Of a stretch of DNA of 64,000 nt, positions 9,664 through 26,758 are shown piece after piece. The translations under genes and the position numbers were made by a program. The stretch is taken from sequence record MW812343.1. One strand, 5' to 3'. The notes beneath the pieces are model-generated. The model saw only the letters and a program-made list of their open reading frames with translations. It did not search any database and was not told where the DNA came from. Numbering within the stretch: the first letter of the stretch is position 1; each line of letters begins with the position of its first letter.

Positions 9664-10311
9664 TCACACTAAGCTGAGTGCGATAAACGGCCGTTTGATA
9701 TTCAGATACGTCACATTGACATTCTTTTTATCTAAAAGATTCAACCGTTCATGGTCAGGAATCGCCGGTTCTAACTGTTCTCGGAAGAACAGGTAGTTAC
9801 GATTGTAATTAAGCGTTTGGTCGACCGGCACTTTATACACTACCGAGGAATTGTCATCCGTATAGCTCGGCCACCCGAAACGGTGTACCGCTTCGTAGAA
9901 CGAATTACGAATGAACTCATCCACACCTGAGGCTTCCATAATGCGCAGGAACATCAGGTCAGCGAAGTCTTTATCAACTGCACGCGAGAGATTACCGGCC
10001 GGGGTATCAGGGTAGACGCCAATACTTGGCTTCTTCTGGTACATCAGGTCGTGTATACACGCCGCAGCGGCCCATGGGCCGTCGGGATGCAATAAGGGCT
10101 TCAATGCATCAGGGATACTCGCTAAGTCCGTTACAAATCCTCTGGGGGCCTCTACGAACATCTGTACGTCAGGATGGATTCCTGTCAGTGAAACCATCTT
10201 GTCCATACCGGGGTGGTTACGGTATAACGTGCGCAAACTGAACGCAAAACAAAAGTCGTCGGTTAAGACAAACCACGGCGCTTGCAATACTTTATAATTC
10301 AGTCGTTGCAT
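9664..10311 (-). CDS. DUF1353 family protein
   Basis: Motifs GFVTDLASIP, AAACIHDLMY, AD..FL..M and Y.AV..FG are characteristic of DUF1353. Confidence 0.8.
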   Translation of the reverse strand: MQRLNYKVLQAPWFVLTDDFCFAFSLRTLYRNHPGMDKMVSLTGIHPDVQMFVEAPRGFVTDLASIPDALKPLLHPDGPWAAAACIHDLMYQKKPSIGVYPDTPAGNLSRAVDKDFADLMFLRIMEASGVDEFIRNSFYEAVHRFGWPSYTDDNSSVVYKVPVDQTLNYNRNYLFFREQLEPAIPDHERLNLLDKKNVNVTYLNIKRPFIALSLV

Positions 10312-10960: not shown

Positions 10961-11004
10961 AAGAAAAAAAAAGAAAAGTGACCCACCCCCGAGGGAGTGG
11001 GCAC
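10961..11004 (-). terminator. Intrinsic terminator closing the RiPP-like operon
   Basis: Minus strand reads GTGCCCACTCC-CTCG-GGGGTGGGTCAC followed by TTTTCTTTTTTTTT. Confidence 0.8.
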
Positions 11005-11007
11005 ACC

Positions 11008-11664
11008 TTAGGCTACACCATTTTCTTCAGCAAGCTGCTTAATCGCGGTGAAGTCTTTTTGTTCCGTCAGAATACGGATGCGCTGCTTCAACACCGACAT
11101 GACCATATGGAGTTCGTTGTCACGAGTGATGATGGTAGCATACAGCTCTTTCACATCCTCAACTGACCACGGCTCAATCTGTTCATTATTCAGTGTTGTC
11201 CAGTACAGGGGATCAACCTCTGACTGGATATAGCTTTGCATGGTATCGCGGGCTTTCTGATCCGCCTGGAACGTTTTATCGCGGAACGTAATGGGAGCAA
11301 ATCGCTCCGCATTATACTTGTCGTTCAGCTTCGGATAAATCGCATTCACTTCCTGATAGAGGTAGTTATCCGTCGAGGTCAACGCTGAGCGGACTTGATC
11401 TAAATCAATCCCTAACACATCGTTGATGAACTCTTTGGTTTTCTTCATCAGGAACGTAATTTCGACCGGCGACAGGTCAAAGCTTTTGAGTTTCTCAATG
11501 GCTTTCTTGTCACTCATCCCGTTAATCAGTTGGTAATGCAGTAACAGGCAGAAGCCGATACGGTTTTCCAACTGGTCTTGGTATTCTTCTACGAAGTTAC
11601 CGTAGCGGTCGATGCGTGTACCCCGTTCGAAATAGCGGGCTTTTATTTCGTCGTTACTAAGCAT
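11008..11664 (-). CDS. DUF4376-like protein (tail-fibre-associated chaperone-like C-terminal domain)
   Basis: C-terminal half ITFRDKTFQADQKARD...YWTTLNNEQ...VEDVKELY resembles DUF4376 (F..D..S/R...W...DN...L...L). Overlaps the upstream gene by 22 nt. Confidence 0.6.
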   Translation of the reverse strand: MLSNDEIKARYFERGTRIDRYGNFVEEYQDQLENRIGFCLLLHYQLINGMSDKKAIEKLKSFDLSPVEITFLMKKTKEFINDVLGIDLDQVRSALTSTDNYLYQEVNAIYPKLNDKYNAERFAPITFRDKTFQADQKARDTMQSYIQSEVDPLYWTTLNNEQIEPWSVEDVKELYATIITRDNELHMVMSVLKQRIRILTEQKDFTAIKQLAEENGVA

Positions 11665-12200
11665 CCGGATTCTCCTACAATCCCAAGGTCATCCAGCAGA
11701 CCGAAGTCAATGAACTGGAAATCGTTTTCCAACTCTTCACCCCAGAGCAGTTTGGCCTCTTCTGCTTCGTCGCCCATCTCTTCCAGCGTCTTACGCACGA
11801 CTTCGTATTCGTGGTAGAACGCATCGGTCAAGTGCGTACCGCGCAAGGCACGGATGGTCACACCGGGGAAGTTCAGGGCCAGACCTAACACGTTGGTTGC
11901 ATCGGATTCACCGGTAGAGCGGCGCAATACCTGCAACTTGTGTTTAGGGAACTTCGCCACACGTTCTTCGAAACCGGGATTACGCTTCTCGATTTCAACC
12001 ACAGACTGGTGCGAGTCTTCCACGCCCTGAAGAGGTATGATGACATTCAGGCCATAACGGTTCAACAGACGAATAACGTCATCGTTGAAATCTTCACCCG
12101 GCACGATCGCATGGACGTTGAACAGCTTGTGTTTACGAATGAACGCATCCACAAGGTGCACATTACGCCGAGTAAAATTGTGAATCAGCAATGACTTCAT
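11643..12200 (-). CDS. Hypothetical protein, probable degenerate radical-SAM barrel fragment without CxxxCxxC
   Basis: 185 aa; AIVPGEDFNDDVIRLLNRYGLNVIIPLQGVEDSH parallels the rSAM segment STNGTLF...LSIGVSIDGLPEVH of the adjacent enzyme. Overlaps both neighbours. Confidence 0.45.
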   Translation of the reverse strand: MKSLLIHNFTRRNVHLVDAFIRKHKLFNVHAIVPGEDFNDDVIRLLNRYGLNVIIPLQGVEDSHQSVVEIEKRNPGFEERVAKFPKHKLQVLRRSTGESDATNVLGLALNFPGVTIRALRGTHLTDAFYHEYEVVRKTLEEMGDEAEEAKLLWGEELENDFQFIDFGLLDDLGIVGESGCLVTTK

Positions 12201-13509
12201 TCGAGGCTCCGAGTTCTAATTTAAGTTTATCCTGCTGCATACGTTCGCGTACGCAGCTCGCACAGTAGCACATAGACTTATCGTGCAGGTCTGCGACATT
12301 CGTGGTACCGGTCTTCTGATACCAGTATTCAGCCACAAGCAGTTTTGCGGTTGTCCAGCCACACTGGCGACGCTCAGCGTGGTACTCTTTACGCGCTTCC
12401 AGCTCACCATCACCGTTCTCGTAAGAAGCAGCCGCACAGCTACCACACGAGTGTTTCATCGGGCAGCCTAAGCAGGTAGACGGGTAGTTGGTGTACTGCG
12501 TCTGGATTTCGTTTAACAGCTTGTTGCCGTCGATATTCACAATCTCACGTCCACGCAGTTCAGCCACCGCTGAACGGGTCGTTACGGTTGACATGAAGCG
12601 GTTACAGCCGTAGATTTTACGGTCGAAGCCGAGGCAGGTCATGTGTGTTAACGTACCGCAGTAAGGACGTACGCGGTCTGGGTGCAGGCGGGTTTGTTCG
12701 TCATCCAGCAACTTCTGACGCCAGTCCGGGTCCCACGTTGCCATGAAGTCCAGCCCATCAGGAATGATGTGGGTCAGGATATTACGCGGTGATTTGTGGT
12801 AGCCGTTATCTACCCAATAGTCGATAACGTCCATCATCTGGTTAGCGATACCCAGAGACATATCACGCGTTAGGATATCTTCGTACGTGACGTTACCGGA
12901 GATGGTACCGCCGCCCGTTTCTTTAATCAGGTGAATCATGCTCTCGCCGTAGCGCGGCAGGGTTTCACCGGTAAAGGTGGCTTTGATACCGAGTTCAGCA
13001 ATACCCACGGATTTGAGGTATTGGTAACCACGCATCGCTTGGTCGTAAGAACCTTCACGCGACGTGGTGAAGATACGATAGCGGTCATGCACTTCTGGCA
13101 GACCATCGATAGACACACCGATGGACAGGCGGTCTTTCCAGCGTTCGATGATTTCTTTACTGATAGGGCGATCGAACAGCGTCCCGTTGGTCGAGATAGA
13201 GAAGACGTACTGGCGGTTGTCGCGCGCCGCTAACTCTTCAGCAGTCTCAAAGACGGCTTTCAGAATCTTCGGCTGCATAAACGGCTCACCCCCGATGATG
13301 TCGATAATGATTTCGGCATCTTCGATGTGGCGATCGCGGTCAAAACACGCATGAATAAAATCGACAGCATCATCCACTTTGTTGTTACGTGGATATTTGC
13401 GCTCGTAGCAATACGAGCAGTCGAGATTACACGACAGGTTAGTCACAACCTGATACGTGAGTGTCGCGCGCTGTTTACGCGTCTGCGATGTAGACTTTTC
13501 TTCGCTCAT
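12163..13509 (-). CDS. Radical SAM/SPASM peptide maturase (CXXX-repeat target family-like)
   Basis: CNLDCSYC (CxxxCxxC), IIGGEP, STNG, SIDG..HD..R and GSYD. SPASM cysteines: C-x7-C...GC, CLGCPMKHSCGSC and RRQC. Extra C-terminal CYCASC. Confidence 0.92.
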   Translation of the reverse strand: MSEEKSTSQTRKQRATLTYQVVTNLSCNLDCSYCYERKYPRNNKVDDAVDFIHACFDRDRHIEDAEIIIDIIGGEPFMQPKILKAVFETAEELAARDNRQYVFSISTNGTLFDRPISKEIIERWKDRLSIGVSIDGLPEVHDRYRIFTTSREGSYDQAMRGYQYLKSVGIAELGIKATFTGETLPRYGESMIHLIKETGGGTISGNVTYEDILTRDMSLGIANQMMDVIDYWVDNGYHKSPRNILTHIIPDGLDFMATWDPDWRQKLLDDEQTRLHPDRVRPYCGTLTHMTCLGFDRKIYGCNRFMSTVTTRSAVAELRGREIVNIDGNKLLNEIQTQYTNYPSTCLGCPMKHSCGSCAAASYENGDGELEARKEYHAERRQCGWTTAKLLVAEYWYQKTGTTNVADLHDKSMCYCASCVRERMQQDKLKLELGASNEVIADSQFYSA

Positions 13510-14399
13510 TTGATTACCTCGTTGCGATGTTTACGAGCATGGATCGTGCGGTTGATGTAACGGTAGGCGTCTTGCCCAATGACTTTAGCCAGCATGTTAC
13601 AACCGCTATCGATTTCCATATCCACATCAAGCGTATAGCCGACGGAGGCATCTGAATCCAGACGAACCAAAGCACTGCACGCATTACACGACTGCTCAAA
13701 GAACTTACTGATAGAAAAACCGGTATGGCCATTGTTCATGACGTTCAGACGCTCAATCTGGTCTTCCATCTTGTTGTAGCCATACATGAAATTCATCACC
13801 AAATCTTGGTTCAGAGGTTTCTTCATGCGGTTGTCCAACAGCAGGGTCATGTCTTTGAACCCGTAGTGGTACAGCGCACGGTGCAAGTCCAGCAGGTCAA
13901 GATGCCAATACTTCTCGGCCAGTTGCTCACGAGTCACCACGGCCCACGTATGGACGTTGTTCAATGCAGCCATCACCTCAAAGGCTTCGAATGCATCATC
14001 TTCAACGACACGCCAGAGCGGACGTTCGCTCTTTTTGTATCCATCGAACGATACGCAGATACGGTTGAACTGTTGCAGCATCGGAAGGTGCTCCAAGCGC
14101 ATTTTCAGACCGTTCGTGTACAGTTCGTGAGTGAGATGTGGATAACGGGCTTTGACTTCTGCCAGCAACGGCTCAATCTTACGGGTTGCCATTAACGGCT
14201 CACCGCCCGTCCAGTTCATCCCTTGTAAAGTCGGGTATTTCTCCAGTTGTTCAAACAGCGCTTCACGCTGAATTTCCCGACCAACATCTTTTGTGTCCAT
14301 GTAATACGCTCCGCCGCAGAAACTACAATCCAAATTACACTTGGACGTCGTCACTATCGACAGCTCGGTAGGGGGACGTATTTGTGGTGCATCGGTCAT
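13506..14399 (-). CDS. Radical SAM protein with short C-terminal Cys motif (Twitch-like)
   Basis: CNLDCSFC, WTGGEP, YTNG and VSFDG; C-terminal CNAC...GC. ATGA overlap with the downstream rSAM gene. Confidence 0.88.
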   Translation of the reverse strand: MTDAPQIRPPTELSIVTTSKCNLDCSFCGGAYYMDTKDVGREIQREALFEQLEKYPTLQGMNWTGGEPLMATRKIEPLLAEVKARYPHLTHELYTNGLKMRLEHLPMLQQFNRICVSFDGYKKSERPLWRVVEDDAFEAFEVMAALNNVHTWAVVTREQLAEKYWHLDLLDLHRALYHYGFKDMTLLLDNRMKKPLNQDLVMNFMYGYNKMEDQIERLNVMNNGHTGFSISKFFEQSCNACSALVRLDSDASVGYTLDVDMEIDSGCNMLAKVIGQDAYRYINRTIHARKHRNEVIK

Positions 14400-14417: not shown

Positions 14418-15296
14418 TTAATAGATCGCGAACAGCGGATCGTCTTCAAACTTCGAACCCACATCCAGAATGAAATCGGAGTGGTAGGCTTCGAGAATCT
14501 GATTCAGAATCGCATGGCGCTCGTTAATCCGGTTAAGGTCATCGAGGGTCACAATTCGCGACTTGATGTTTGAAACCGCCTTTTCTTCGTCAGCCGTTAA
14601 GGAGACCTTCGTCAGAAGGAAACTTACCAGCTTGCTCAGGTCAGCTTCGGTACCCGGCATTTCACCAAAGCGCCACTGCACCAGAAACTGCATCCACGGT
14701 TTGCGGATACGGCGACTGATTTCATGCGGGTCAGTGATCGCTTCAAATTGTTCATCTGCTGCATTCCAACGGAACTTGTAGCTGTACGCCAGCAAGTCTG
14801 CCAGACAGTGGATGCCGAGGGTTTCATATCCTAAGATGTGGTGGTATTTTTCCACCCCTTGGTATTCTTTCGTACCCGTAGGAACCAGGGTATACCAGAA
14901 CACGTTAGAGGAAGGATAGTCCCAACTCCATTCGCGGCGAACCATGGGAATAACGTCCAAATCCGCAAAAGGCGTGAAGATCAGTTCCAAATCCATCGAA
15001 TGGTTGAGGACGGAGTCGGTGAAGAAATACTTACCGTCAATCAACCGGCCGCTGCAACTCAGCTCGCTTTGTTCGAACTTCACATGCTGAACGCTATGCT
15101 TGCCGATGGTGTAGGTGTTCTCTTCGGTGTACTGCTTACGCACAATATCCCGCCCACGCACCTTAGGCCATTCGCCCGGCAGCATCGAAATAAGGCGGAC
15201 ATCATCCGCGACATGCGCACGCACACTGTCGAGTGATGAAATCTGTAACGGAAAGTTTTGCGTCGTGCGGTACGCCAAATGGAGGTCGTTCTTCAT
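14418..15296 (-). CDS. Hypothetical protein within the RiPP-like operon
   Basis: 292 aa; AAGGA RBS; lies between the precursors and the rSAM genes; no motif recognised. Confidence 0.8.
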   Translation of the reverse strand: MKNDLHLAYRTTQNFPLQISSLDSVRAHVADDVRLISMLPGEWPKVRGRDIVRKQYTEENTYTIGKHSVQHVKFEQSELSCSGRLIDGKYFFTDSVLNHSMDLELIFTPFADLDVIPMVRREWSWDYPSSNVFWYTLVPTGTKEYQGVEKYHHILGYETLGIHCLADLLAYSYKFRWNAADEQFEAITDPHEISRRIRKPWMQFLVQWRFGEMPGTEADLSKLVSFLLTKVSLTADEEKAVSNIKSRIVTLDDLNRINERHAILNQILEAYHSDFILDVGSKFEDDPLFAIY

Positions 15297-15313: not shown

Positions 15314-15523
15314 CTATCGGTTACCCGCCCCGTAGCTACATCCCCCGCTGCATGTCCAGCTACAGCTCCCGCCGCAGTTGTAATGAGAGAGTGGAAGACC
15401 AGCGAGGTTATTGGTCGAACTGACCGTACCGCGGGTAGCGATGTAATTGTTAGCCTGTGCGGTCGAGATATAACCTTCGACGTTTTGCACTCGATCGCGA
15501 ATGTTTTTCAATGAGATAGCCAT
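15314..15523 (-). CDS. Cys-rich RiPP-like precursor C (short core, 4 Cys)
   Basis: 69 aa; leader MAISLKNIRDRVQNVE; core CGGSCSWTCSGGCSYGAGNR; GAGGA RBS. Confidence 0.8.
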   Translation of the reverse strand: MAISLKNIRDRVQNVEGYISTAQANNYIATRGTVSSTNNLAGLPLSHYNCGGSCSWTCSGGCSYGAGNR

Positions 15524-15544
15524 AGGTCCTCACTCGATAGATTT

Positions 15545-15937
15545 CTATCGACTGCCTGAACAGCCAGAGCATCCCGTACAACTAGAACTACAGGAACCAG
15601 AGCAGTTACCTGAACACGTACCCGAACAACCCGAGCACCCGCCAGAACACGACCCAGAGCATCCTGAGCACCCGCTGGTACACCCAGAGGTACAGCTCGA
15701 CGAACAGGAAGAACCACAGCCCCCTGAGGCCGAACCGGAACAGCCACCTGAACAGCTAGAGCAACCCCAGCTACAAGTTCCGCCGCAATCGTAGTGAACA
15801 CGTCCTTGGCCGCCGAATAAGTCGACGTTATTGGTTGCTTTACCGCGAATGTATGTTTGTACGCCGCCTTCGGTTTTTAATGCGTTGGCTTCGACAACCG
15901 CAATACGGTCAGCAAGGTTTCGCAAATTGATAGCCAT
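15545..15937 (-). CDS. Cys-rich RiPP-like precursor B (CxxxC repeats, 20 Cys)
   Basis: 130 aa; leader MAINLRNLADRIAVVE; core begins CGGTCSWGC; AGGGG RBS. Confidence 0.85.
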   Translation of the reverse strand: MAINLRNLADRIAVVEANALKTEGGVQTYIRGKATNNVDLFGGQGRVHYDCGGTCSWGCSSCSGGCSGSASGGCGSSCSSSCTSGCTSGCSGCSGSCSGGCSGCSGTCSGNCSGSCSSSCTGCSGCSGSR

Positions 15938-15946
15938 AATTGCCCC

Positions 15947-16336
15947 TTAATTCGGCCCAGAGCACGCAGAGCATCCGGTACAGCTGGAAGAACACGATCC
16001 AGAACAACCGGATGTGCATTTCCCGCTACAGGATGAAGAACATGAGCCGGAGCAGCCAGAACAACCGGAACACCCGCCACCGCAGTTAGAAGAACAGCTA
16101 CCCACGCACGTAGAAGTACAGGTTCCTGAGCAGCTAGTACAGCTTGCAGAACACCCGTTCGAGCACGACCAGCTACAACTGCCACCACAGTCTAGTCGGG
16201 AGGGAGACCACCCACTAAACGAGTCCGCAGCGTTGTATGCTTTCGATGCTACCTGACCGTCTACACGAGGCCCGGTTGCATAGTTTGCTTCTACATTGTT
16301 AACGCGGTCGCGTATGTTTTTCATTGAAATTGCCAT
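15947..16336 (-). CDS. Cys-rich RiPP-like precursor A (CxxxC repeats, 21 Cys)
   Basis: 129 aa; leader MAISMKNIRDRVNNVE; core begins CGGSCSWSC; AAGGA RBS. Confidence 0.85.
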   Translation of the reverse strand: MAISMKNIRDRVNNVEANYATGPRVDGQVASKAYNAADSFSGWSPSRLDCGGSCSWSCSNGCSASCTSCSGTCTSTCVGSCSSNCGGGCSGCSGCSGSCSSSCSGKCTSGCSGSCSSSCTGCSACSGPN

Positions 16337-16350
16337 ACGTTTCCTTTGTC

Positions 16351-16391
16351 AATAAAAAAATGAGGACGCTGCCATAATGACAGCCCCTCAT
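16351..16391 (-). terminator. Intrinsic terminator/attenuator between the fibre gene and the precursor genes
   Basis: Minus strand reads ATGAGGG-GCTGTCA-TTA-TGGCAGC-GT-CCTCAT followed by TTTTTTATT. Confidence 0.65.
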
Positions 16392-16401
16392 GTAATAAGT
16401 G

Positions 16402-17601
16402 TTATCTTGTACCCGCTTCAGCTTGTACGTCGTCGCGAGAAGTCAGGCTGCTGTTGACGTGTACTGCCGCCTGAACCACACCACCGTACTGCTTGTGGAG
16501 GTAGTTCGGGTGCGGGTTGTCCGCGTTAATGTGGTTTTGCAGGTTCTGAGACAGCGTGTTGATGGAGTTCTGCAACCCAGCCACTTGCTGTTTCAGTGCG
16601 TTGACCTCACCGGAGAGATCCTGAATCTGCTGCTGCGTATCCGACCCGGCTGCTTCCAAATCACTGATGCGCTGTTTCAACCCATTGATGACTTGGTTCT
16701 GGTCATTCACTAACTTTTGAAGTTGAAGTACCAGAGAGTTAAGGTCAGCTTGTTGCAGGGCAGCTTTCTGGTAATTCAGCGCCACCGAGTTCAGCTGGTC
16801 ATTCCACGAACCAAGCGCGCTGACCACTGCATCAATACGTGCACCCAGTGCCGTGTCTGCGGCTTTCAGGTTACCGATATCCGCGAGCACCGCATTAATA
16901 GCCGTCTGCACGCTTTGAATCAGCGCACGGATTTCCGTTTCAGTCAGGCCGTTCGCTTGGTGAATATCCAGCGAGTGGACGTTCCCCTTCGAATCAATGT
17001 GCGATTGCAGCGCGGTCATCAACTGGGTCTGCATGTCAGACATGGCAGTCAGAATCTGTTGCAGCTGAACTTCGTTACCGGAGTTAATCGCATCGGTCAT
17101 CAGCGCTAACTGCGTGATGATGTACTCGAAACCAAACAGGTCACCAAGGTCTTTAAAACCCGGTGCTGATGCAAAGGTATCAGGCACGTTACGCAGGTCA
17201 GCAAAGTCCACCTTACGGTCTTCAAGGTTCGCATCGGCTAACGCTTGTTTAATCGCGGTGATGACCGCTGACTGAGGCCCGCCGACCACTTGAGCCGTAC
17301 AGACAATATCGGTTGGAATCGCACTGTTGGTGACAACGACCGCCATACAGACTTCGCGGTTCTTTGTGAGTTTCATGTACGCCGGATGGACGTAAATCAG
17401 CTCGTAGTCGGTGCCGCGGGTATAAATGGTGTTCGGTTGGTTGGCCGGACGCATACGGAACGTGTCTGCGTAGAACGGCCCTGCTGGAAAGGCGAACGCG
17501 CGGTTAACCTTTCCCCCACCTAACACAACTGGGACATTGACCGCGTTACTGGACGCGGAACCCGTCAGGTCAAGTGGGTATTGAAATAGAATATCTGGCA
17601 T
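16402..17601 (-). CDS. Short tail-fibre-like virion protein with long coiled coil
   Basis: N-terminal YPLDLTG...GPFY...GTDY domain is shared with the three large fibres. Heptad-rich middle contains RISDLE; HINADNPHPNYL fibre motif near the C-terminus. ATG at 17601 follows GGGAG. Confidence 0.7.
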   Translation of the reverse strand: MPDILFQYPLDLTGSASSNAVNVPVVLGGGKVNRAFAFPAGPFYADTFRMRPANQPNTIYTRGTDYELIYVHPAYMKLTKNREVCMAVVVTNSAIPTDIVCTAQVVGGPQSAVITAIKQALADANLEDRKVDFADLRNVPDTFASAPGFKDLGDLFGFEYIITQLALMTDAINSGNEVQLQQILTAMSDMQTQLMTALQSHIDSKGNVHSLDIHQANGLTETEIRALIQSVQTAINAVLADIGNLKAADTALGARIDAVVSALGSWNDQLNSVALNYQKAALQQADLNSLVLQLQKLVNDQNQVINGLKQRISDLEAAGSDTQQQIQDLSGEVNALKQQVAGLQNSINTLSQNLQNHINADNPHPNYLHKQYGGVVQAAVHVNSSLTSRDDVQAEAGTR

Positions 17602-17648
17602 GGCCAAACTCCCTTAGCGAGACGTCCTTGTCTCATCGTGTTAGATGG

Positions 17649-20600
17649 TTACAGCAACTTAGGCATAAGATTGACCGACAGCTTGGAAGCCGCAGAGGTT
17701 CCACCGTAGTAGTTTGCCCCTTTCCCGACATAGAGAGCGTTATCTTCAATCAAGTACATGATAGGCTCAACGGTCGCGTATTCAGCCATGATAACCGGGA
17801 AGTAATCACTCAGCGAAATACCCGCTGGCATATCGACCCGATAAACTTCGCGTACACCTTGCGTCAGTCTGCCGTTGCTAGGCCCGGATACGTTCGTGGT
17901 TGCCCGAATCAGAACGGTATCGGCATCGGACAGGTAGAACGGGGTCTCTGTGCCGTCGGTATCAATGTTAGAGAGGCTAAACGCCGCAAACATAGAAGCC
18001 TTACTGGCCGAGTTTCCACTGATTGTGAATACGTTCTTCACACCCACCTGCGCGGTCAGAACAGCAGAGTTGTTACCGGAGAGAATACTCGCAGCGTTTC
18101 CTGTGGTTTCATTCCGAACCGAGATAGAACCAGATGAAAAACTGTACCCGGCACCCACTTTGACACGTACCGTCGGTGTCGAAGGTGTAACTTCCACAAT
18201 CATCGTCCAAATCAACGACGTAATCGCAGACATCCCTTCAATACCAACCCACTTCGCTCCATCAATCGCAGACTGTGCTGCACCATTCACCCCTTTTACC
18301 GTAAAGTGTTTGAAGTCTTTAGGTAGCGTTGTGATGTCTACATCGCGAAGCAGCTCAATCGGTGCGCCGTGGTTTTGTGCGGAGAAAATCGAACCTACCT
18401 GATTGACGTCCAAGTACGTCCCGCCGGTTGCGGAAGGTGCAGCAATGGGTTGTTTACGCAACAGCCCCAAACGGGAAAGCCTCGCTTCGGTATCGACATT
18501 CACATCGTGACTGTAGATCGTTTCTGCGTGCTCTGTCAGTTGTTTCAACTCACCTAAACGCTTCACCTTGGTGAACTCCGATGACAGGATACGTTTGTCA
18601 TCTGTCACCACCGTGCCCAGATACAGGCGACTGTTGGTGTCGGGTAACTTCGTTGTCAACAGCTGGTATTCTGCCACACCGTTAGTGACCACTGCGTGCA
18701 TGTAGAACGTACGGTTCTGGTATGCCCCAGGGAACAGTGTCCGAATGTCTGCACTGTATTCCGGTAACGTGTAATACGAGGAACCGAAACGCAACGCTTC
18801 TTCTTCGGTGACGTACAGCTGCCACCCTTCTGCCGTTTTCACCCCTGCGAGAATCGCATCTTCTGACGTTGTGGACTGGAACGTTCTGCTGAGATTCGGA
18901 TACAGGGCTGCCCCGTAGTACATACCGGAATAGAACCACTTCGTGATACCGAGGTAACCCGTTTCAGGATGAATGAACAGATCCTGTTCGCCCACTTGCG
19001 GGTTGACGCGGAAGAAGGTGTTCGTCCAGTCTGACCATGAGGTGTCGCAGGTCAGTAAGAAGCTGGCCCAACGTGAGTCACCCACCACGCCATGGCGGTA
19101 CACACCACCCAACAGCAGCACGTAGCCGTCGTTACGGTACACCAATTTGGAGTTGATGTATTGGTCGCGAGTTAAACTGATAGCGGCATTGTTGTCGTAG
19201 TACGCATCCACAACCAACGCACGGGAACCCAGCGTCAGAGAGATGTTTCCTACTGCATCCACCGCCATCGGGACACGCCACACCCACGTACGGTTATACG
19301 CACGGACTTTGCTGTCGTTTTCCCACGTACGCGTAGTCAGGTACATCATCGCAAGGTTAGTCCCCCCGATATCAAACACCTGCAACGCGATCTGCTTGTC
19401 GACGGTCAGTGGATTATCGTAATACGCCACCTCTCCCTGCACAGCAGCATTCATGCTATCGAACAACGCCTGACTGGCTGTAATACGGTCAGCCGTCAAC
19501 ACCGTTGTTCCCGCCACGTTTTTATACGCGTAGGTACCCGGACTGTTAATGGTGCGACCATTAAGGGTAAGGGCGTTATTCTTCCAGACGTTCGGTATCA
19601 TCGCAATTTCTTGCGCGACAGCAGCGTCGACCGAGACACGGTCATTGTCCGGGCCGTATCCATACGCAGAGTAACCGTCGAAATACTGGCTACCCGTGAC
19701 ATACTTCGCCACTGCGTATTTCGTTGTGGCCAGATAACGGAAAAGAATCTTCTGCTCACTACCCCCAAGGTGGATACCCATGCGCATGTACTGCTGGTAA
19801 ACAGAACCTTCCGCGCCTTTACCGGTCATGCTGCTGATGATACCAATCCGTGGGGAGCCCGCTAACAGGTCGTAATACTCTTTCCCGCCCAGCGAACCAA
19901 TGTCGTAATACGGCGGATTGTTGCTGTACACGTCACAGATAATCCCGACCAGATATCCCGCAGTCGCGAAATAGTTGGTAAGCAACGCTACGCCAAAGTT
20001 ACGGTTTGATACCGACGTTGGCGGTTGACCATTCGGGAACTCCAACTTGTTCTCGGTAATCGCCAATGGGAAGATGTTGGTTTCCAGCGTGACCTTGCCG
20101 GTATCCACATCGATGTTGTACACGGTTGCCCACGCGTCAGACCATGTGGCATTATAGGCGTTGCTGTAGTAACCGTGCGACTCACTGCGCAACCGAACGT
20201 TCTCACCGCGTGCAGCACTCAGGAAGGACGGGCGATAGTTCGCCACGTTTCTTGACCCTGTCCACTTCTCACGACCGGCTGCTGTGGTGTAAGCAATCCG
20301 CTTCGTGGCTGTGTTGTCGTCCTCAGGGCCGCCGTCTTCTACAAAATGAATCGCATCCCCATCTTTACTCGGATAGGTCAGCGACATCACGGCGAAGTTG
20401 GCTACCGTTTGGCCGGTCAGTGCCGTACGTGCTACCTTCCATGCCGCGACGTAGAACGTCGAGTTGGTCAGGTAGTTGTACGCAATCATGATCGCTTTCG
20501 CAGTCAGAGTGATGGTACAGTACGTTATGTTTTTCACCGGATTAAGGCTGCCGGTAGAACGCGCCGCATCGGGAAGGTTTACCTGATACACCTGCGTGTG

Positions 20601-22592
20601 CTTGGCTTGGTTCATGGAACCGCCATACACAACCAGATACGTTTTACTGTCCGACCCGGTAAACAGAGCCAAACCATCGCCAGCTAACAGCACCTTCGTT
20701 AGCGTCACGCCAGGGAAGTTAACCATCCCCGCGGGGTGATACTTCTGTGTGGTCGGAACAGCCCCGAGCAGCTTCCCATCGTTACCCACCTTCGAATACC
20801 AATAATAGATACCGTCGGTTTCGGTCGGACCATCCGTCCCGTTTCGCAGGATGTAAAGCTTATCACCTTCAATCCCAGCAGAACCTAAAGCAGACGAACG
20901 GAAGAAACCGAAGCCTGCGTAGTTACTGACCGTTGGGATATTCAGGAATCCGCTGTTCCCGTAGGATGCACCACCTGTTGTCCACGACGGTAGCAGGGTA
21001 TCCAGTACGCCTTTATACGTGTTAAGACGCTGCTGAACGTTGTAGCCCTGTTTAGACGTCACAACCTTATCGGTGGTGGTGTCAATGGCATCCCAGAGTT
21101 GCAGCAAACCTGCGGTAGTATCAGACGCCGTTGGTACGGCGGTCAGATCCGCAAAGGTGTGCGTGTGGTTCGCCAATGCTTTATTCGCCAATACCGCACG
21201 AATGGCTGTTGTCAACGGTTTTTCAGACGGGGCTGTGTTGTTGAGGTTACCTACACCCACGTCGGATGCAGACAGGGACAACGTCTGGGTTGACCCGTCA
21301 TCCACAAACTTCTTACCGTTGATGGTGTACGTGTTGTCCACGTAGTTATCCAGCGTTTTCTTCAACACGTTAACTGCGTATTGGGAAATCGCTGTACCGG
21401 AAGTCAGGTTCGCCGACAGGTTAGTGATGGCAAACAGACCCGGCACCGTATCCGTTGCGGTAGGCAGTTGGGCGTTCATGGTCAGCGGCGATGACTCACG
21501 CGCCGTACCGAACGTTTTGATTGAATCGGTCGAGGCGAAGTACGCATTCCCCGGCAGGAGTTTCACTTCCGCCAGATACAGCGATACCATGTCGGGCGTT
21601 ACCAGATACGCACCGTTGAAAATCGGCGCAACAGCGCCGTTCAGGACGTACGCGGTATTCAGACCGGAGCCCAGTTCAACCCCCACGCCTTTTTCGTTAT
21701 TATCTGCATCCGCGGTGACATTAATGGCACGCGTGGTCGTGATGAGGAACTTCTCACCTTGCAGAGTAATGACATGACTGGAGTCTGCCGTACGGAACGT
21801 CAATGCGCCGTTGTTCAGCACTTTCAAACGGCCACGCAGTTCTCCGAGCACCACAGGCATCAGGGTATCGATGTGTGCTTGCTGAATCCCATTGGTCTTC
21901 ATGATAGCCACTAACTCATCCAGCGTCTTTCCGAACGCTTTGGTTGAGTCAACGGCTTTGGTCAGCACTTTCAATGCACCGATTTCGTCAGTGGTGTACT
22001 GGTGGGCATTCTTGATACGATGATGGCTATACAGGTTGTCATCAAAGATTTTCTTGCCGTTAGCAAAAATCAAATCGGTGACTTCACTGTACGCGGCATC
22101 CATTTCTCCGGCGCGCTTAATCAATCCCAGACGGATATCATCCAGCGCTTTTACCACCTCATCGCGAAGCAGGGCTTCGTCGAGGTTAGCCGGGGGGTCG
22201 ATGGCAGGAATCACTGGCGCATAGCGCATCAGTTCCGACCAGTCAACGTTACGCGGATCGGCAATGTCCTCCTTTACGAGGAACTTACCAATCTCGGTCT
22301 GTGGAACGCGGTATTCGCGCCCAATCGAACTGATGGTGTAATCAACGGAGGTGTCCCCGTTAATCAACATAATCCCGCCGTAGATTTGGTCTTTCATTGC
22401 GACAGCGGCTTCTTTGTAATAGTAGCCGAGGTAGTAATCCAGACCCTCAATGAGCTTTGTGCCTGCGCTGTTTTTCAGCTCAAGCCCGGTACGGAAGAAC
22501 GGCCCCTCAGGAGGGATGACCACATTGTATTTGTTTGGATACGTGGTCGTCAGTAGCGTACCGGTAAATTTGGCTACGTTCGTGCTCGCCAT
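17649..22592 (-). CDS. Large tail fibre / baseplate fibre protein (1647 aa)
   Basis: Shared N-terminal GPFF...G.DY domain; fibre shaft motifs (DVGVGNLNNT, HTHTFADL, AS.T.AG..QL); large beta-rich insert. Confidence 0.75.
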   Translation of the reverse strand: MASTNVAKFTGTLLTTTYPNKYNVVIPPEGPFFRTGLELKNSAGTKLIEGLDYYLGYYYKEAAVAMKDQIYGGIMLINGDTSVDYTISSIGREYRVPQTEIGKFLVKEDIADPRNVDWSELMRYAPVIPAIDPPANLDEALLRDEVVKALDDIRLGLIKRAGEMDAAYSEVTDLIFANGKKIFDDNLYSHHRIKNAHQYTTDEIGALKVLTKAVDSTKAFGKTLDELVAIMKTNGIQQAHIDTLMPVVLGELRGRLKVLNNGALTFRTADSSHVITLQGEKFLITTTRAINVTADADNNEKGVGVELGSGLNTAYVLNGAVAPIFNGAYLVTPDMVSLYLAEVKLLPGNAYFASTDSIKTFGTARESSPLTMNAQLPTATDTVPGLFAITNLSANLTSGTAISQYAVNVLKKTLDNYVDNTYTINGKKFVDDGSTQTLSLSASDVGVGNLNNTAPSEKPLTTAIRAVLANKALANHTHTFADLTAVPTASDTTAGLLQLWDAIDTTTDKVVTSKQGYNVQQRLNTYKGVLDTLLPSWTTGGASYGNSGFLNIPTVSNYAGFGFFRSSALGSAGIEGDKLYILRNGTDGPTETDGIYYWYSKVGNDGKLLGAVPTTQKYHPAGMVNFPGVTLTKVLLAGDGLALFTGSDSKTYLVVYGGSMNQAKHTQVYQVNLPDAARSTGSLNPVKNITYCTITLTAKAIMIAYNYLTNSTFYVAAWKVARTALTGQTVANFAVMSLTYPSKDGDAIHFVEDGGPEDDNTATKRIAYTTAAGREKWTGSRNVANYRPSFLSAARGENVRLRSESHGYYSNAYNATWSDAWATVYNIDVDTGKVTLETNIFPLAITENKLEFPNGQPPTSVSNRNFGVALLTNYFATAGYLVGIICDVYSNNPPYYDIGSLGGKEYYDLLAGSPRIGIISSMTGKGAEGSVYQQYMRMGIHLGGSEQKILFRYLATTKYAVAKYVTGSQYFDGYSAYGYGPDNDRVSVDAAVAQEIAMIPNVWKNNALTLNGRTINSPGTYAYKNVAGTTVLTADRITASQALFDSMNAAVQGEVAYYDNPLTVDKQIALQVFDIGGTNLAMMYLTTRTWENDSKVRAYNRTWVWRVPMAVDAVGNISLTLGSRALVVDAYYDNNAAISLTRDQYINSKLVYRNDGYVLLLGGVYRHGVVGDSRWASFLLTCDTSWSDWTNTFFRVNPQVGEQDLFIHPETGYLGITKWFYSGMYYGAALYPNLSRTFQSTTSEDAILAGVKTAEGWQLYVTEEEALRFGSSYYTLPEYSADIRTLFPGAYQNRTFYMHAVVTNGVAEYQLLTTKLPDTNSRLYLGTVVTDDKRILSSEFTKVKRLGELKQLTEHAETIYSHDVNVDTEARLSRLGLLRKQPIAAPSATGGTYLDVNQVGSIFSAQNHGAPIELLRDVDITTLPKDFKHFTVKGVNGAAQSAIDGAKWVGIEGMSAITSLIWTMIVEVTPSTPTVRVKVGAGYSFSSGSISVRNETTGNAASILSGNNSAVLTAQVGVKNVFTISGNSASKASMFAAFSLSNIDTDGTETPFYLSDADTVLIRATTNVSGPSNGRLTQGVREVYRVDMPAGISLSDYFPVIMAEYATVEPIMYLIEDNALYVGKGANYYGGTSAASKLSVNLMPKLL

Positions 22593-22623
22593 GAAAAAAC
22601 ACTCCTACGTATTGATAAAAGGT

Positions 22624-22668
22624 TACCGCCCTTTCGGGCGGTAGCTTGCGGGTAACACGCCCGCAAGC
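22624..22668. other. Two back-to-back hairpins between fibre genes
   Basis: TACCGCCC-TTTC-GGGCGGTA is immediately followed by GCTTGCGGG-TAACACG-CCCGCAAGC. On the minus strand the pair is followed by ACCTTTTAT. Confidence 0.75.
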
Positions 22669-22678
22669 GTGTACCCTC

Positions 22679-25600
22679 TTACACCCACTGTCCTAAGTCA
22701 GTTCCATCTGTCGTCCGTTCGGCCAGCATCTTGTCTTGCAACACTTTCCACAACTTCATGGTCATGTGCAGCGGATTGATGCGTTTCGCGAGATAACGAT
22801 CGGTGACGTACCAAGACGCATCGTACGCACTTGCCTCCGTAATGGTTGTCAGCAGGTTATTGTCACTGTCGTAGACTTCGTAAGTGAATTCCAATTTAAT
22901 GGCTTCACCTTTGTTGCCCGGCAGGTAAAATAACTGGAGCTTTAAACCGCCACGACGGTAGTGCGCAGGTATCGTGAGTTCCCCCGATGCCGTAGCTGCA
23001 TAATCGGCATTAATGACTTGGTTACCGACGGCAATCTGACGGATGGCATTGACTGGCGAACCCTTAACAACCTTCACCTTGGCGGCCTTAGACGCCTGTG
23101 GGAGATTGTATTCGAACAACAACCCCGTCATTAAGAATTTCGTGCCATCAGTACCGCCGTACTTACCGAACCAGTCACCGTTGGTGAGAGCTGCGGTAGC
23201 CGACTGTATAGCCGCTCCCCGATTAAACGCCAACGGAAGGTAACCGTCCTGCGAGCTATAGTGGCCCCGCAACCCCGCGTTTATCCCCACGAATTCCGTA
23301 TAGCGTGAGTCCGTGTAATAAGCACTGGCTGGGGAAAGAACGGTTGTATTTTTCACAGGTGTGCTTGGAAGAACACCCGAATCGGCATACGACTCAAAGA
23401 GCGAACGCAGGTATTGATATTTACCTTCATCCAGCCCAATGCCGTCGAGTGGGGCAACGGTACCTAACAGGGTGCAGGTGCTCGCCCCGCCGGACAATGG
23501 CGGCAGCTCCAACCCAACAAAACCGCCCATGAGCCCACGAACATCAACGCTGAACTGAATTTCCAGTTCGTTAACTACCAGTGGGATATCTGCATCCGTG
23601 TTGTTACCGGGGAAGTAGACACTGAACACCGACAGCTTGCGTTGTGTGACGTTGTACGTGTAGCGCACCGCCAAGCGTGGAGAACCTGCTGCTAACGAAA
23701 GTAAGTCCATCACCCCCTGCACAGAGACCGCCTCATTCTTCCGAAGCGATGTCGTTTTGGAGTACAGCGTGTAGGACTCAAACGTCGGTAGCGTAGTGGA
23801 AACCCCATTATGCGACGCAATGGCAGTCACATAACCGTAGTCCGGTTCTGCTGATCCATCCAACGGAACGCGCAGGTAACGGTTGCGGTAATCTGCACTC
23901 GCATCTCCAAGCGTTGGGCTGGCGAACAGCAACTTCGGCAACGGTTGGGCGTATAACCCACTGGTTTGATATTCATCGTAAACCAGCCCGCCTTGGTACG
24001 TGGCCTCACCATTAACTTTTGGATTGGACGGCGTAAACCACCACTGTGGGGTTTGTTCCGTCGTCTCCAACAGCATGTACGCGTTCTTCGTGGTGCTGTT
24101 ACGCGCCATCTGGGTTAGCCCATAGACGGTGGTAGCGCCCGCAGTCAGTTCTCCATACAAGGCAGAGGGAGAATTAAACCGCAATTTACCAATGGGGAGT
24201 AACGCAGCATTATCTGACAACCGCCAGTCCCGCGGATCGGGGATGTGCTGTTTCAAACTGGCGATATGTGCTGACAGTTCGCTGGTCACACCGTAGTCGT
24301 GCATCATGGGGAAGCTGATGGTCGAGGACTTGATACCACCCGCCGGAACATCAATCACCCCAATCAATGCCGTTTCTGGTGCCACCTCGGTTGTCAACTG
24401 CGGCTCCGCGCGACTGTACATGGATTGGGTTACCATGTTCAGATAAAGGAAATGGCGGTTACCGAACGTTGGGGTCATGAACTCCCCAAGTTGCGCGATA
24501 GGCGTGCCCACATCACTGCGATAAATCGGCAAGTCTTCGTCGTAGATCTCGAAGGCCATTGCTGCGGCCTTCGTGCTGTCGTTGCAGTCTACGCGAATCC
24601 CCACACAGGCAGACTGTTTCGCGGAGTCCACATCGACTTCCAAGAAGTACGGCGAGTTGCCGGTACCGACGGATTGACCATCCAGATAGACCGTGACCTT
24701 ACCCCCCGCCACGATATACAGTCTCAGCGTCCCTGTGTACGATTTTAAGCGTAGTTTGGTCAACAGTGAGATAACGGACAGGTCACCCATCCCCGTGGCA
24801 CTGAGGCCAATAGGTACGGCTTTGAGGGCAAATTTCGGTTTGGATGAAATCGCAGAGAAGTCAAAGTTAGCCGCGGTGTTTTTCACACCACCCGCCCAGC
24901 TTTTCTCCATGGTGTTGTTCGGACTGAACCAGTTGAACATCGGGGTGGTTTCGAGGTTAATCGAACCGCTTACCTTGCCCTGGGCACGGTCATTTCCACG
25001 CAGGTAGAAATACTGGAGGTCTTTGACTTGCAGAATACGGCCTGATGCCACTGACCACGTCGACGCGTCGATAATTGAGAAGTCCGTTGCCATACCCGTT
25101 TTCACGGTGTTCAACGAATCCCCAATCGCATCCAGACGGTCAGACAGGCGTTTGAGCAGGTTTGGTGTCACACCCTTACTGCCACTCAGCCCGTCATCCA
25201 GATCAGTGTAGCGTCCCAACCCTTCTGTCAGGTTGGTAGCCAGCGGCAAGTTTAACGACGCAAACGTATGCGTGTGTCCCTTGTCGCTCAGGTCATCCAT
25301 CGCCGCAGCTTGGTCAACCGATACCGGCTTGTTCACGTCAGCCGTGTTATCCGCCTGGCTCAGACCGATATCCGATTTGGTCATGGTACGCGAACCATCA
25401 TCCATCGGTTTGGAGTTCAGCATGGTGGTTTTGGCGACATAACCGGACGCTTTTCCTTCATACGGCGCGAGGGAGTTTGGCGTAGCAGCAACACCACTCG
25501 TTTCATCCCCAGCACCGGATTTCAGTTTGGCTGTTCCTTTTACTGCGGTAGTAGCAGTGGGTAACGCCAGCGTCGGTTTGACTGGGTCAGCCTTTGAGCC

Positions 25601-26758
25601 TTTACCCGTGACGGAGATGCCGTTCTTCCCTTCAACGTAAATCTTCTGGTCGTCAGGGTCGTTAGACTGTCCGCCGTCAGTCGGTTGGTATTTCATCAAC
25701 AATGTCGTGGTGAGCAAGACTTTCCCGTTCAGGGTCAGTTTGTCCATTCCGAGTTTGTTGCCCGACGATTCAATACGCAGGGTATTGGTGCCCGAAGTCC
25801 ACTCCATGAAGCGGGTCGTGGTATCGGCTGCATCGTAGCCCGCGGCCAGAATCACAGCGCCGTTACTTTTGATGGTAAACGCCGTGTCCGTAAACGTAAT
25901 CTCTGACGACCCGTTTTTGGACTTGAACAGTGAGCGGTTCGCCGCCAGTTGCTGAATAAAGACACCGGAGACATCTTTACACGCCCACTTCTCGATATAC
26001 TTATCGATATCGCTCTGCTGGAGGCCCAAGGCACGGATTTCAGCAGTCAGGGTACGTAAGGTCTTCCCATAGGCTAAAAACGTGTCAGGGGTCTTTAGGT
26101 TAGCAGGATGGGCGTTCGCCTGTGCAGGCGTTGTACCGTGTGGATTGTGCGCGGCGATATGTCCAGGGTAGTTAAACGCTGCAATCTCTTTGGCCAATCC
26201 GTTTACCGTAACCTTGAGCGCATCAAGCTTGGCACGAATGGCATTATTTGCCGTTTCGGAATCCAGTTCGACGTCATGTACTGCGGAGGCAACGTACTTT
26301 TTGTTCAACAGGTCATGCCACGAGGTGGCAGCCGGTTTCGGTGGGAAGAAGGTAGGACGGTTTTCAACCTTGAACCAATCGGCATCCACCGGGTTATTCA
26401 GATATTTAACCAGTTCATCAAGAATGTCGATGAACGGTGAATAGAACGTATCCCCCAACGCCTGACCGTTGAAGGTCAGTGACCCACCCACTTTCGGGTT
26501 AATGAGCTGGATACCACACGCAACGGGTGTAGCAACTGACTCATTCAATTCCGGCATCTGGTAAGTAATTTCATAATCGACACCGCGGGTAAGCGGTGTC
26601 GTACTGCCTGACGCAGTCACCACCAAACTGTTTTCAAAGAACGGGCGGTTTTTAAGAATCACCACCCGGTCGTTTGTCAGTTCGTTTGTGATGATGCGTT
26701 CTTCCGTGAACGCATTTGCGGGGCTAGTACCCTTCCAGTCGTAAGGATACGAAACCAT
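22679..26758 (-). CDS. Large tail fibre / baseplate fibre protein (1359 aa)
   Basis: YPYDWKG...PFF...G.DY N-terminal domain; HIAAHNPHG, DIGLSQADNTAD.NKPVS and HTHTF motifs. Confidence 0.75.
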   Translation of the reverse strand: MVSYPYDWKGTSPANAFTEERIITNELTNDRVVILKNRPFFENSLVVTASGSTTPLTRGVDYEITYQMPELNESVATPVACGIQLINPKVGGSLTFNGQALGDTFYSPFIDILDELVKYLNNPVDADWFKVENRPTFFPPKPAATSWHDLLNKKYVASAVHDVELDSETANNAIRAKLDALKVTVNGLAKEIAAFNYPGHIAAHNPHGTTPAQANAHPANLKTPDTFLAYGKTLRTLTAEIRALGLQQSDIDKYIEKWACKDVSGVFIQQLAANRSLFKSKNGSSEITFTDTAFTIKSNGAVILAAGYDAADTTTRFMEWTSGTNTLRIESSGNKLGMDKLTLNGKVLLTTTLLMKYQPTDGGQSNDPDDQKIYVEGKNGISVTGKGSKADPVKPTLALPTATTAVKGTAKLKSGAGDETSGVAATPNSLAPYEGKASGYVAKTTMLNSKPMDDGSRTMTKSDIGLSQADNTADVNKPVSVDQAAAMDDLSDKGHTHTFASLNLPLATNLTEGLGRYTDLDDGLSGSKGVTPNLLKRLSDRLDAIGDSLNTVKTGMATDFSIIDASTWSVASGRILQVKDLQYFYLRGNDRAQGKVSGSINLETTPMFNWFSPNNTMEKSWAGGVKNTAANFDFSAISSKPKFALKAVPIGLSATGMGDLSVISLLTKLRLKSYTGTLRLYIVAGGKVTVYLDGQSVGTGNSPYFLEVDVDSAKQSACVGIRVDCNDSTKAAAMAFEIYDEDLPIYRSDVGTPIAQLGEFMTPTFGNRHFLYLNMVTQSMYSRAEPQLTTEVAPETALIGVIDVPAGGIKSSTISFPMMHDYGVTSELSAHIASLKQHIPDPRDWRLSDNAALLPIGKLRFNSPSALYGELTAGATTVYGLTQMARNSTTKNAYMLLETTEQTPQWWFTPSNPKVNGEATYQGGLVYDEYQTSGLYAQPLPKLLFASPTLGDASADYRNRYLRVPLDGSAEPDYGYVTAIASHNGVSTTLPTFESYTLYSKTTSLRKNEAVSVQGVMDLLSLAAGSPRLAVRYTYNVTQRKLSVFSVYFPGNNTDADIPLVVNELEIQFSVDVRGLMGGFVGLELPPLSGGASTCTLLGTVAPLDGIGLDEGKYQYLRSLFESYADSGVLPSTPVKNTTVLSPASAYYTDSRYTEFVGINAGLRGHYSSQDGYLPLAFNRGAAIQSATAALTNGDWFGKYGGTDGTKFLMTGLLFEYNLPQASKAAKVKVVKGSPVNAIRQIAVGNQVINADYAATASGELTIPAHYRRGGLKLQLFYLPGNKGEAIKLEFTYEVYDSDNNLLTTITEASAYDASWYVTDRYLAKRINPLHMTMKLWKVLQDKMLAERTTDGTDLGQWV

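Follow-up and report, generated by a model that had tools for sequence, protein, structure and literature searches.

The DNA analysed here (hereafter the window) is a stretch of 64,000 nucleotides from the 240 kb genome of the Erwinia jumbo phage pEa_SNUABM_6 (Machinavirus, record MW812343), and the subject of this work is a unit of eight genes on its minus strand. The unit encodes, in this order, three cysteine-rich repeat proteins that we call A, B and C, an accessory protein (p292), two radical S-adenosylmethionine (radical-SAM) enzymes of 297 and 448 residues, and the proteins p185 and p218. Protein A (129 residues, 15947..16336, minus strand) is made of a 49-residue leader and an 80-residue core of Cxxx repeats with 21 Cys. 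Protein B (130 residues, 15545..15937, minus strand) has 20 Cys and one Cys slot filled by Ala, and protein C (69 residues, 15314..15523, minus strand) has a leader of the same type followed by a core with just four Cys. The three proteins are paralogs encoded head to tail, they share an amphipathic helix in their leaders, and all of them fall into a single PHROG, phrog_6085 (E 2e-48 for A), to which that database assigns no function.

All three cores open with the motif (D/N)CGG(S/T)CSWxCS. A six-frame translation of the whole window scanned with the pattern C[GN]G[STG]CS[WF] gave exactly three matches, each of them a core start on the minus strand: CGGSCSW in A (16169..16189), CGGTCSW in B (15767..15787) and CGGSCSW in C (15356..15376). 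The C-terminal ends of A and B are near-identical and read CSGSCSSSCTGCS(A/G)CSG, and C stops after its fourth Cys. Cysteines make up 25-26% of the cores of A and B, the remaining residues being small, with hardly any Lys or Arg, and they follow each other as a mixture of CxxxC and CxxC, that is, at a distance of 2 or 3 residues, through 20 consecutive spacings in A and 19 in B. The single gap of 7 residues found in B corresponds to the Ala placed in a Cys slot, which keeps the register. At the DNA level the repeats are weak, and Tandem Repeats Finder gives only arrays with a copy number under 4: A and B together hold 28 CxxxC units, spelled as 28 distinct 12-mers, in which all six Ser, four Gly and two Cys codons are present. 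The first-pass annotation of this DNA, made from the letters alone, had described these traits correctly, and its reading of the synonymously scrambled codons as a mark of selection on the protein was also borne out. In comparison with phage Huxley, changes at the first, second and third codon positions number 7/3/31 in the core of A, 1/0/18 in the core of B and 1/0/17 in the leader of C, with ratios of non-synonymous to synonymous substitution (dN/dS) of 0.01-0.07 overall and 0.03-0.07 for A. The protein sequences of A, B and C are under strong purifying selection and, because the differences from Huxley concentrate at third codon positions, the frame proposed for them is the true one.

The GenBank records inspected, those of pEa_SNUABM_6, Huxley and SPN3US, the best-studied relative, either lack A and B or call them wrongly. 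In MW812343, C is the sole annotated member, and an antisense open reading frame (ORF) on the plus strand (pEaSNUABM6_00178, 16014-16256) is called across A. The ORFs called gp176 and gp177 in Huxley run antisense over the A and B genes; in SPN3US, gp166 crosses B out of frame; and an automatic gene caller likewise misses A and B. No mention of gp163 to gp167 was found in the papers on SPN3US and their supplements.

The trio was then followed through 18 related jumbo-phage loci, which take in SPN3US, phiEaH2, Caitlin, ChrisDB, CR5, Phobos, Derbicus, Kwan and Wellington together with metagenomic contigs, and whose genera include Machinavirus, Seoulvirus, Derbicusvirus and Wellingtonvirus. Every locus keeps A, B and C in unchanged order with the same downstream genes, and every A has exactly 21 Cys. 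B is more variable, with either 20 Cys and the Ala slot, or 21, or 23 Cys, and the CR5, Phobos and Kwan groups have Cys at the Ala-filled position. C has four Cys in ten of the loci, and its core is reduced to a CxxxCSW pair in the other eight (the CR5, Phobos, Derbicus and Kwan groups), where the gene nevertheless remains under selection. The Trp of the core start is kept by all 18 copies of A and of C, and is replaced by Phe in the B of three loci, those of SPN3US and two metagenomic phages. From this variation at the Trp and in C, the conserved minimum can be written as C-x-G-x-C-S-(W/F). As for the leaders, a trimer motif R-h-x-x-h-E occurs in strict form in 11/18 copies of A, 6/18 of B and 10/13 of C, and in relaxed form in all.

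A separate observation concerns the tails of A and B (window positions 15947-16020 and 15545-15620, respectively), which within one phage are alike at 14-20 of 21 residues in 13 of the 18 loci. Moreover, both proteins have their last four Cys spacings in common (3322 or 3333) in 15 loci and an equal number of Cys slots (21) in 13, with codons shared at chance level only. Such a likeness would fit either an in-register pairing of the two proteins or a common constraint set by the enzymes and, as the 18 loci are not independent, we take it as suggestive.

Both radical-SAM genes, whose presence the first-pass annotation had noted, lie directly downstream of the trio. The longer one (12163..13509, minus strand), at about 1.8 kb from A, B and C, encodes the 448-residue enzyme, whose invariant cysteines among 19 homologs are those of a CxxxCxxC motif (residues 27, 31 and 34) and seven more at residues 284, 302, 346, 349, 355, 358 and 383, a SPASM-like pattern by which the seven-Cys C-terminal domain appears to be of the SPASM type. 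The best NCBIfam models for this enzyme are TIGR04115, with 129 bits (E 3e-37, cut-off 350), and PapB, with 127 bits (cut-off 340), followed by HxsB, QhpD and SCIFF. By sequence, the closest solved structure is CteB (5WGG, E 5e-13), and the alignment pairs residue 24 of the query with residue 104 of the chain, so that the N-terminal recognition element (RRE) typical of maturases for peptides that are made by the ribosome and modified after translation (RiPPs) is absent from the phage enzyme. The thioether-forming relatives TIGR04115, PapB, QhpD and SCIFF/CteB are the families and structure nearest to it. As a side observation, the enzymes of the jumbo phages carry an extra C-terminal CxCxxC (Cys 414, 416 and 419; window 12163-12290) that is absent from shorter relatives of 375-400 residues. 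The short enzyme of 297 residues (13506..14399, minus strand) has a CxxxCxxC motif, a GGEP motif and a conserved C-terminal CxxC...C, with no SPASM domain, and its matches are weak and generic (the PapB N-terminus, HxsC, MoaA and twitch proteins).

Between C and the enzymes lies the gene for p292 (14418..15296, minus strand; phrog_8030), which is conserved with the cassette. Its homologs reach as far as the accessory proteins of a Deferribacter prophage (BLASTP E 3e-11; phrog_8030 E 2e-11) and a Campylobacter prophage (hhalign 94.9%, E 5e-8). An AlphaFold2 model of p292 with a mean confidence (pLDDT) of 86 found no meaningful fold relative in Foldseek (best E 0.08), VIA (best Z 4.4 in the PDB) or the ESM Atlas, and no RRE was seen in this model nor in either radical-SAM enzyme.

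It is outside the jumbo phages where the cassette offers the most telling picture. A Cxxx target, an accessory protein of about 250-290 residues, a short radical-SAM enzyme and a SPASM-type one recur together in phages and prophages that are unrelated. There, the closest relatives of the 448-residue enzyme (30-39% identity) all occur in tail modules, close to a fibre protein with a Cxxx tail, an accessory protein of 224-263 residues and a short radical-SAM enzyme. In Campylobacter P2-like prophages (L019 and L110), the target is a protein of 384 residues encoded after baseplate J and tail protein I, which matches Pfam Phage_tail_fib (E 2e-40) and ends in a C-terminal Cxxx run; the genes that follow encode a 250-residue accessory protein, the SPASM-type and the short radical-SAM enzymes, a DUF1353 protein, sheath and tube. 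A Deferribacter prophage (L018) has, after a GpJ-like tail protein, a target of 302 residues with fibre-type repeats that ends in YYRCSDCSWTC and 29 Cys, and in a T4-like contig (L021) a target of 568 residues encoded after gp13 ends in FYTCGGSCSWSC and 29 further Cys and bears the Pfam domain PF27846 ('tSAM_targ_Cxxx_rpt'); in both cases the accessory protein and two radical-SAM enzymes come next. The same layout and junction are found in three other viral contigs (L108, L111 and L113). In a viral contig of 284 kb (L112), the short and the SPASM-type enzymes are fused into one protein of 686 residues (L112:5134-7194), which adjoins a Cxxx-tailed protein of 451 residues and an accessory protein of 241. 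These fibre proteins match phrog_6085 (E 3e-14, 4e-12 and 7e-6, part of the leader included) through their C-terminal 70-100 residues, and the junction Y-x-C-x-G-C-S-W is often in common. In a wider count, a Cxxx-repeat ORF was present within 6 kb of the enzyme relative in 70 of 75 viral loci. The relatives score somewhat higher with TIGR04115, at 157 bits for the enzyme of the T4-like contig and 144 bits for that of the Campylobacter prophage L019.

Two further groups were observed in these searches. A second and larger subfamily of gut phages (L114-L177, from IMG/VR) has a single radical-SAM/SPASM enzyme of about 445 residues and Cxxx proteins of 350-570 residues encoded after tail genes, with a core start resembling SSCRGACSGLC. 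Genomes of Termititenax/Margulisiibacteriota (L023-L025) encode proteins of about 660 residues with about 120 Cys adjoining a related enzyme.

These comparisons bear on two earlier proposals. The core Trp had been described as invariant, and the second enzyme as a possible maker of a Trp-centred crosslink of the cyclophane kind. The Trp is invariant in the three copies of the window but not in the family: apart from the Phe of some B proteins, the position is occupied by Gly in the Campylobacter lineage (L019/L110) and in L112, both of which keep the two radical-SAM enzymes (fused in L112), the short one being intact. A dispensable Trp in lineages having both enzymes argues against a dedicated Trp-crosslinking enzyme. 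The known three-residue cyclophane-forming enzymes YhhB, GrrM/OscB and AmcB are, as the 448-residue protein appears to be, SPASM radical-SAM enzymes, and they act at aromatic residues of repeat peptides. The models for them, however, gave scores of just 63.6, 56.5 and <25 bits where 445, 310 and 425 are required, and the aromatic residue can be lost in the related phage cassettes. The companion suggestion of the first-pass annotation, that one of the enzymes could form thioethers, seems reasonable for the SPASM-type one. As for protein C, it does represent the minimal conserved motif and a sensible test substrate, as had been pointed out. Its standing as a distinct substrate is weakened by the homologous Cxxx tails that form the C-termini of fibre proteins elsewhere, which make C look more like a shortened protein completing a structural trio than like the precursor of a natural product of its own.

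The occurrence of the same repeat at the end of tail-fibre proteins in unrelated phages indicates that A, B and C are probably enzyme-cross-linked parts of the virion, rather than a secreted peptide antibiotic. The reading that we favour, at a rough probability of 0.55, is that the three are proteins of a tail-fibre module whose cysteine ladder would be cross-linked by the pair of radical-SAM enzymes, with p292 presenting the substrate. Each of them is laid out as an N-terminal amphipathic helix (with the trimer-type R-h-x-x-h-E), a fibre-type junction (N-N-x-x-L-x-G ... Y-x-C) and the Cxxx ladder; elsewhere the junction and the ladder make up the C-terminal tail of a fibre protein, and the SPN3US-like phages have the module split into three genes. 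In a first step, the SPASM-type enzyme would put repeated thioether links, from Cys sulfur to carbon, along the ladder after translation. As this enzyme is devoid of an RRE of its own, the conserved p292 is probably the one presenting the substrate. A second radical step, independent of the Trp, would be performed by the short enzyme, and the uncleaved and non-reducible cross-linked product would finally be built into the fibre/baseplate apparatus, possibly as an A-B-C bundle to which C would give only the junction motif. The analysis shows the genes, the selection on them, their conservation, the cassette and its association with fibre proteins, whereas thioether formation, the part played by p292, the oligomeric form and a place in the virion are what we infer.

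Several observations weigh against this reading. PapB, QhpD and CrpC take Asp, Glu or Gln as acceptors, and none of these residues is present in the cores, so that the acceptor chemistry of A, B and C is a guess. The Pfam SPASM model does not match the C-terminal domain of the 448-residue enzyme even at E 10, and this enzyme scores well under the cut-off of every named family. The matches between tails so rich in Cys, Ser and Gly are partly compositional. The published proteomics of SPN3US virions relied on databases without these unannotated genes and could not have seen A and B, and a search of sequencing runs returned DNA-type entries only and no RNA run. Moreover, a tail at the C-terminus of a fibre protein could serve in assembly and be removed later instead of being a mature part. 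A, B and C themselves contain no fibre shaft or attachment domain; the 401-residue virion protein encoded upstream was considered as a detached shaft, but the shaft region of the L021 fibre protein does not resemble it, which leaves this idea unsupported.

A more ambitious extension, which we put forward tentatively and with more doubt than belief, is that in many tailed phages radical-SAM enzymes put non-reducible thioether staples into a 'cysteine ladder' located at the fibre tip, the SPN3US-like phages doing so in a detached A-B-C bundle kept in register, with C as its conserved CxxxCSW cap. If this were the case, it would represent a previously unrecognised class of enzymatic, post-translational virion cross-linking, present in phages as diverse as 240-kb jumbo phages, P2-like prophages and gut siphoviruses.

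Other explanations can be given for the same genes. The leader-plus-core layout of A, B and C, with its leader-like N-terminus, is the one expected for a phage-encoded RiPP, in which the cores would mature into polycyclic thioether peptides, perhaps with a Trp crosslink, to be freed at lysis and act on other cells or phages. In its favour, the closest families to the maturase are thioether maturases of RiPPs, clusters with three paralogous precursors are common among RiPPs, and standalone small Cxxx proteins do occur beside radical-SAM enzymes in some phage contigs (L164, L166, L175 and L177). We regard a RiPP as unlikely, however, given that scans of the eight proteins of this terminator-bounded unit with protein family models matched no peptidase for removing a leader and no transporter for export, that the enzymes have no RRE, and that an 80-residue core with 21 Cys far exceeds the known size of RiPPs. 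In addition, tails homologous to these cores occur as part of tail-fibre proteins of 250-570 residues, the unit sits in a structural module, and the Trp is not kept in lineages with both enzymes. Another explanation is a Cxxx module, with or without modification, that works as an intramolecular or detached chaperone, or as a trimerisation clamp, for the giant fibre proteins and, being removed or left behind, is absent from mature virions. A C-terminal place on a fibre protein is typical of chaperone domains that are cleaved off, as established for tail-spike and tail-fibre intramolecular chaperones, the leaders have a trimerisation-type motif, and both the jumbo phages and the Campylobacter prophage have nearby DUF1353 genes annotated as 'tail assembly chaperone'. 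Such a role looks improbable to us, since two iron-sulfur enzymes and an accessory protein would be a heavy investment for a transient helper, the fused fibre proteins have no peptidase domain, and the number of Cys slots is kept exactly from genus to genus, which points to a final structure of defined form.

The least probable of the explanations considered, and to our eyes a very unlikely one, is a metallothionein-like ladder that binds Zn, Cu or an Fe-S centre with no covalent modification, the radical-SAM enzymes acting elsewhere. Cores with a quarter of their residues as Cys, in CxxxC and CxxC spacing and otherwise composed of small residues, are what a metal-binding protein could look like, and bound metal ions are well established in phage fibres, as in the tips of T4 gp37 and gp12. 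But the tight linkage of Cxxx ORFs to the enzyme relatives in the viral loci, the fact that the nearest relatives of the 448-residue enzyme act on Cys peptides, and the failure to match any metallothionein family all speak against such a ladder.

Among the systems already described, the closest one is the CXXX-repeat radical-SAM family (TIGR04115/TIGR04114, PF27846), in which a SPASM-type enzyme stands beside long runs of C-x-x-x with small residues. The L021 fibre protein, which bears PF27846, reaches 20.7 bits with TIGR04114 against a cut-off of 20. Unlike that family, the 448-residue enzyme stays at 129 bits of the 350 required, A, B and C have no match to TIGR04114 at E 0.01, and the cassette of the window includes a second radical-SAM enzyme, an accessory protein and the Y-x-C-x-G-C-S-W junction. 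PapB, the ranthipeptide maturase of freyrasin, also introduces thioethers repeatedly, at a CxxxX motif, and its model aligns with the phage enzyme from the N-terminus of the model onwards. PapB, however, joins Cys to Asp, a residue that like Glu is missing from the cores of A, B and C, its score is 127 bits against 340, and freyrasin is a short and cleaved peptide. The SCIFF maturase CteB (5WGG) is a thioether-forming SPASM enzyme and the closest solved structure, but its N-terminal RRE of about 100 residues has no counterpart in the phage enzyme, and the SCIFF score is 63 against 425. The pair HxsB/HxsC resembles the phage system in having paired radical-SAM enzymes and a target of short-period repeats, with 83 bits for the 448-residue enzyme with HxsB over residues 6-372 and 33 bits for the 297-residue one with HxsC; both scores are far under the cut-offs, the repeat is H-x-S instead of C-x-x-x, and the Hxs system is also uncharacterised.

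Two cases of cross-linked proteins are also of interest. In Methanococcus voltae, the SPASM enzyme CrpC makes ranthionine links on the whole cysteine-repeat protein CrpA, a 2026 demonstration of thioether cross-linking at the scale of a protein, in this case an archaeal one (PMC13692751). CrpA resembles A, B and C in its conserved N-terminal 'leader' and in having paralogs (PMC13692751); the differences are its archaeal origin, 17-residue repeats with C-x-x-Q/D, a predicted RRE in CrpC and the use of one enzyme, not two. Tails cross-linked through cysteines are known from the disulfide network of phage Milano (PMC10811340) and from the tube disulfides of a siphovirus (PMC13576161). Those are spontaneous disulfides of a few Cys, whereas the window encodes dedicated radical enzymes and a ladder of some 20 Cys.

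The association of a SPASM radical-SAM enzyme with a CXXX-repeat target is therefore already known from the curated models TIGR04114/TIGR04115 and PF27846. In the literature, we found no experimental work on the CXXX-repeat radical-SAM family or on its link to tail fibres, and no paper on a phage tail-fibre connection, on a cassette of twin radical-SAM enzymes plus an accessory protein, or on a split A/B/C trio. The best reading of the A/B/C system would be that of a twin-enzyme, phage-structural form of this family. If phages do rely on thioethers to make the receptor-binding end of the fibre harder or to give it shape, with a radical-SAM chemistry known for small secreted peptides and, only of late, for a whole archaeal protein, we would be in front of a new kind of virion maturation, with a bearing on host range, particle stability and phage engineering, and the orphan CXXX-repeat family would gain a biological role. 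C, like the two-Cys C of the CR5-type phages, offers a convenient minimal substrate to work out the chemistry.

With respect to the rest of the locus, the 6.1 kb around the trio match pEa_SNUABM_6 at 100% identity, and the phages Huxley, Machina and Parshik at 89%. The unit has a terminator at either end, and its downstream genes overlap by 4, 38 and 22 nucleotides. A hairpin followed by a U7 run (16360..16391, minus strand; -18.7 kcal/mol, z -4.2) separates it from the preceding gene, and the ribosome-binding site of A (AAGGAAA) lies just past it; a second hairpin (10981..11002, minus strand; -23.1 kcal/mol, z -4.2) closes the unit. The preceding gene (16402..17607, minus strand) encodes the 401-residue virion structural protein, which has a coiled-coil region and is the homolog of SPN3US gp167 (phrog_2163, E 1e-107), named 'putative virion structural protein 20' in GenBank. 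Before it come two giant baseplate/tail-fibre paralogs of 1647 and 1359 residues (17649..26758, minus strand), homologs of SPN3US gp168 and gp169, so that the unit comes directly after this group of virion and giant fibre genes. In SPN3US, gp168-170 are baseplate/tail-fibre candidates missing from tailless particles (PMC5694885).

Of the two last proteins of the unit, p185 (11643..12200, minus strand; phrog_7988) is predicted to fold as a partial (beta/alpha) barrel like the radical-SAM core (AlphaFold2 pLDDT 84.5), and its matches by Foldseek and VIA include 3can (Z 9.2), SuiB (8.4) and CteB (8.1). The cluster cysteines are absent from it, and p185 may be a third, cluster-less radical-SAM-like subunit. 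Compared with the C-terminal half of the 472-residue radical-SAM enzyme of L021, its profile gave no match (hhalign probability 1.5%). The last gene encodes p218 (11008..11664, minus strand), a DUF4376 protein (Pfam PF14301, E 2e-8) with a weak match to the tail-fibre family phrog_1807.

Near the cassette, the jumbo phages have a DUF1353 gene (L179:8199-8846, corresponding to about 9664-10311 of the window, minus strand), called 'tail assembly chaperone' by RefSeq in the case of Huxley and SPN3US; the DUF1353 gene of the Campylobacter prophage (L019:7068-7433) comes immediately after both radical-SAM genes. Finally, contigs of about 240 kb labelled as Salmonella enterica or Escherichia coli encode the SPN3US-type enzyme, one such sequence being present in 598 contigs, which indicates that SPN3US-like jumbo phages are common passengers of isolate assemblies.

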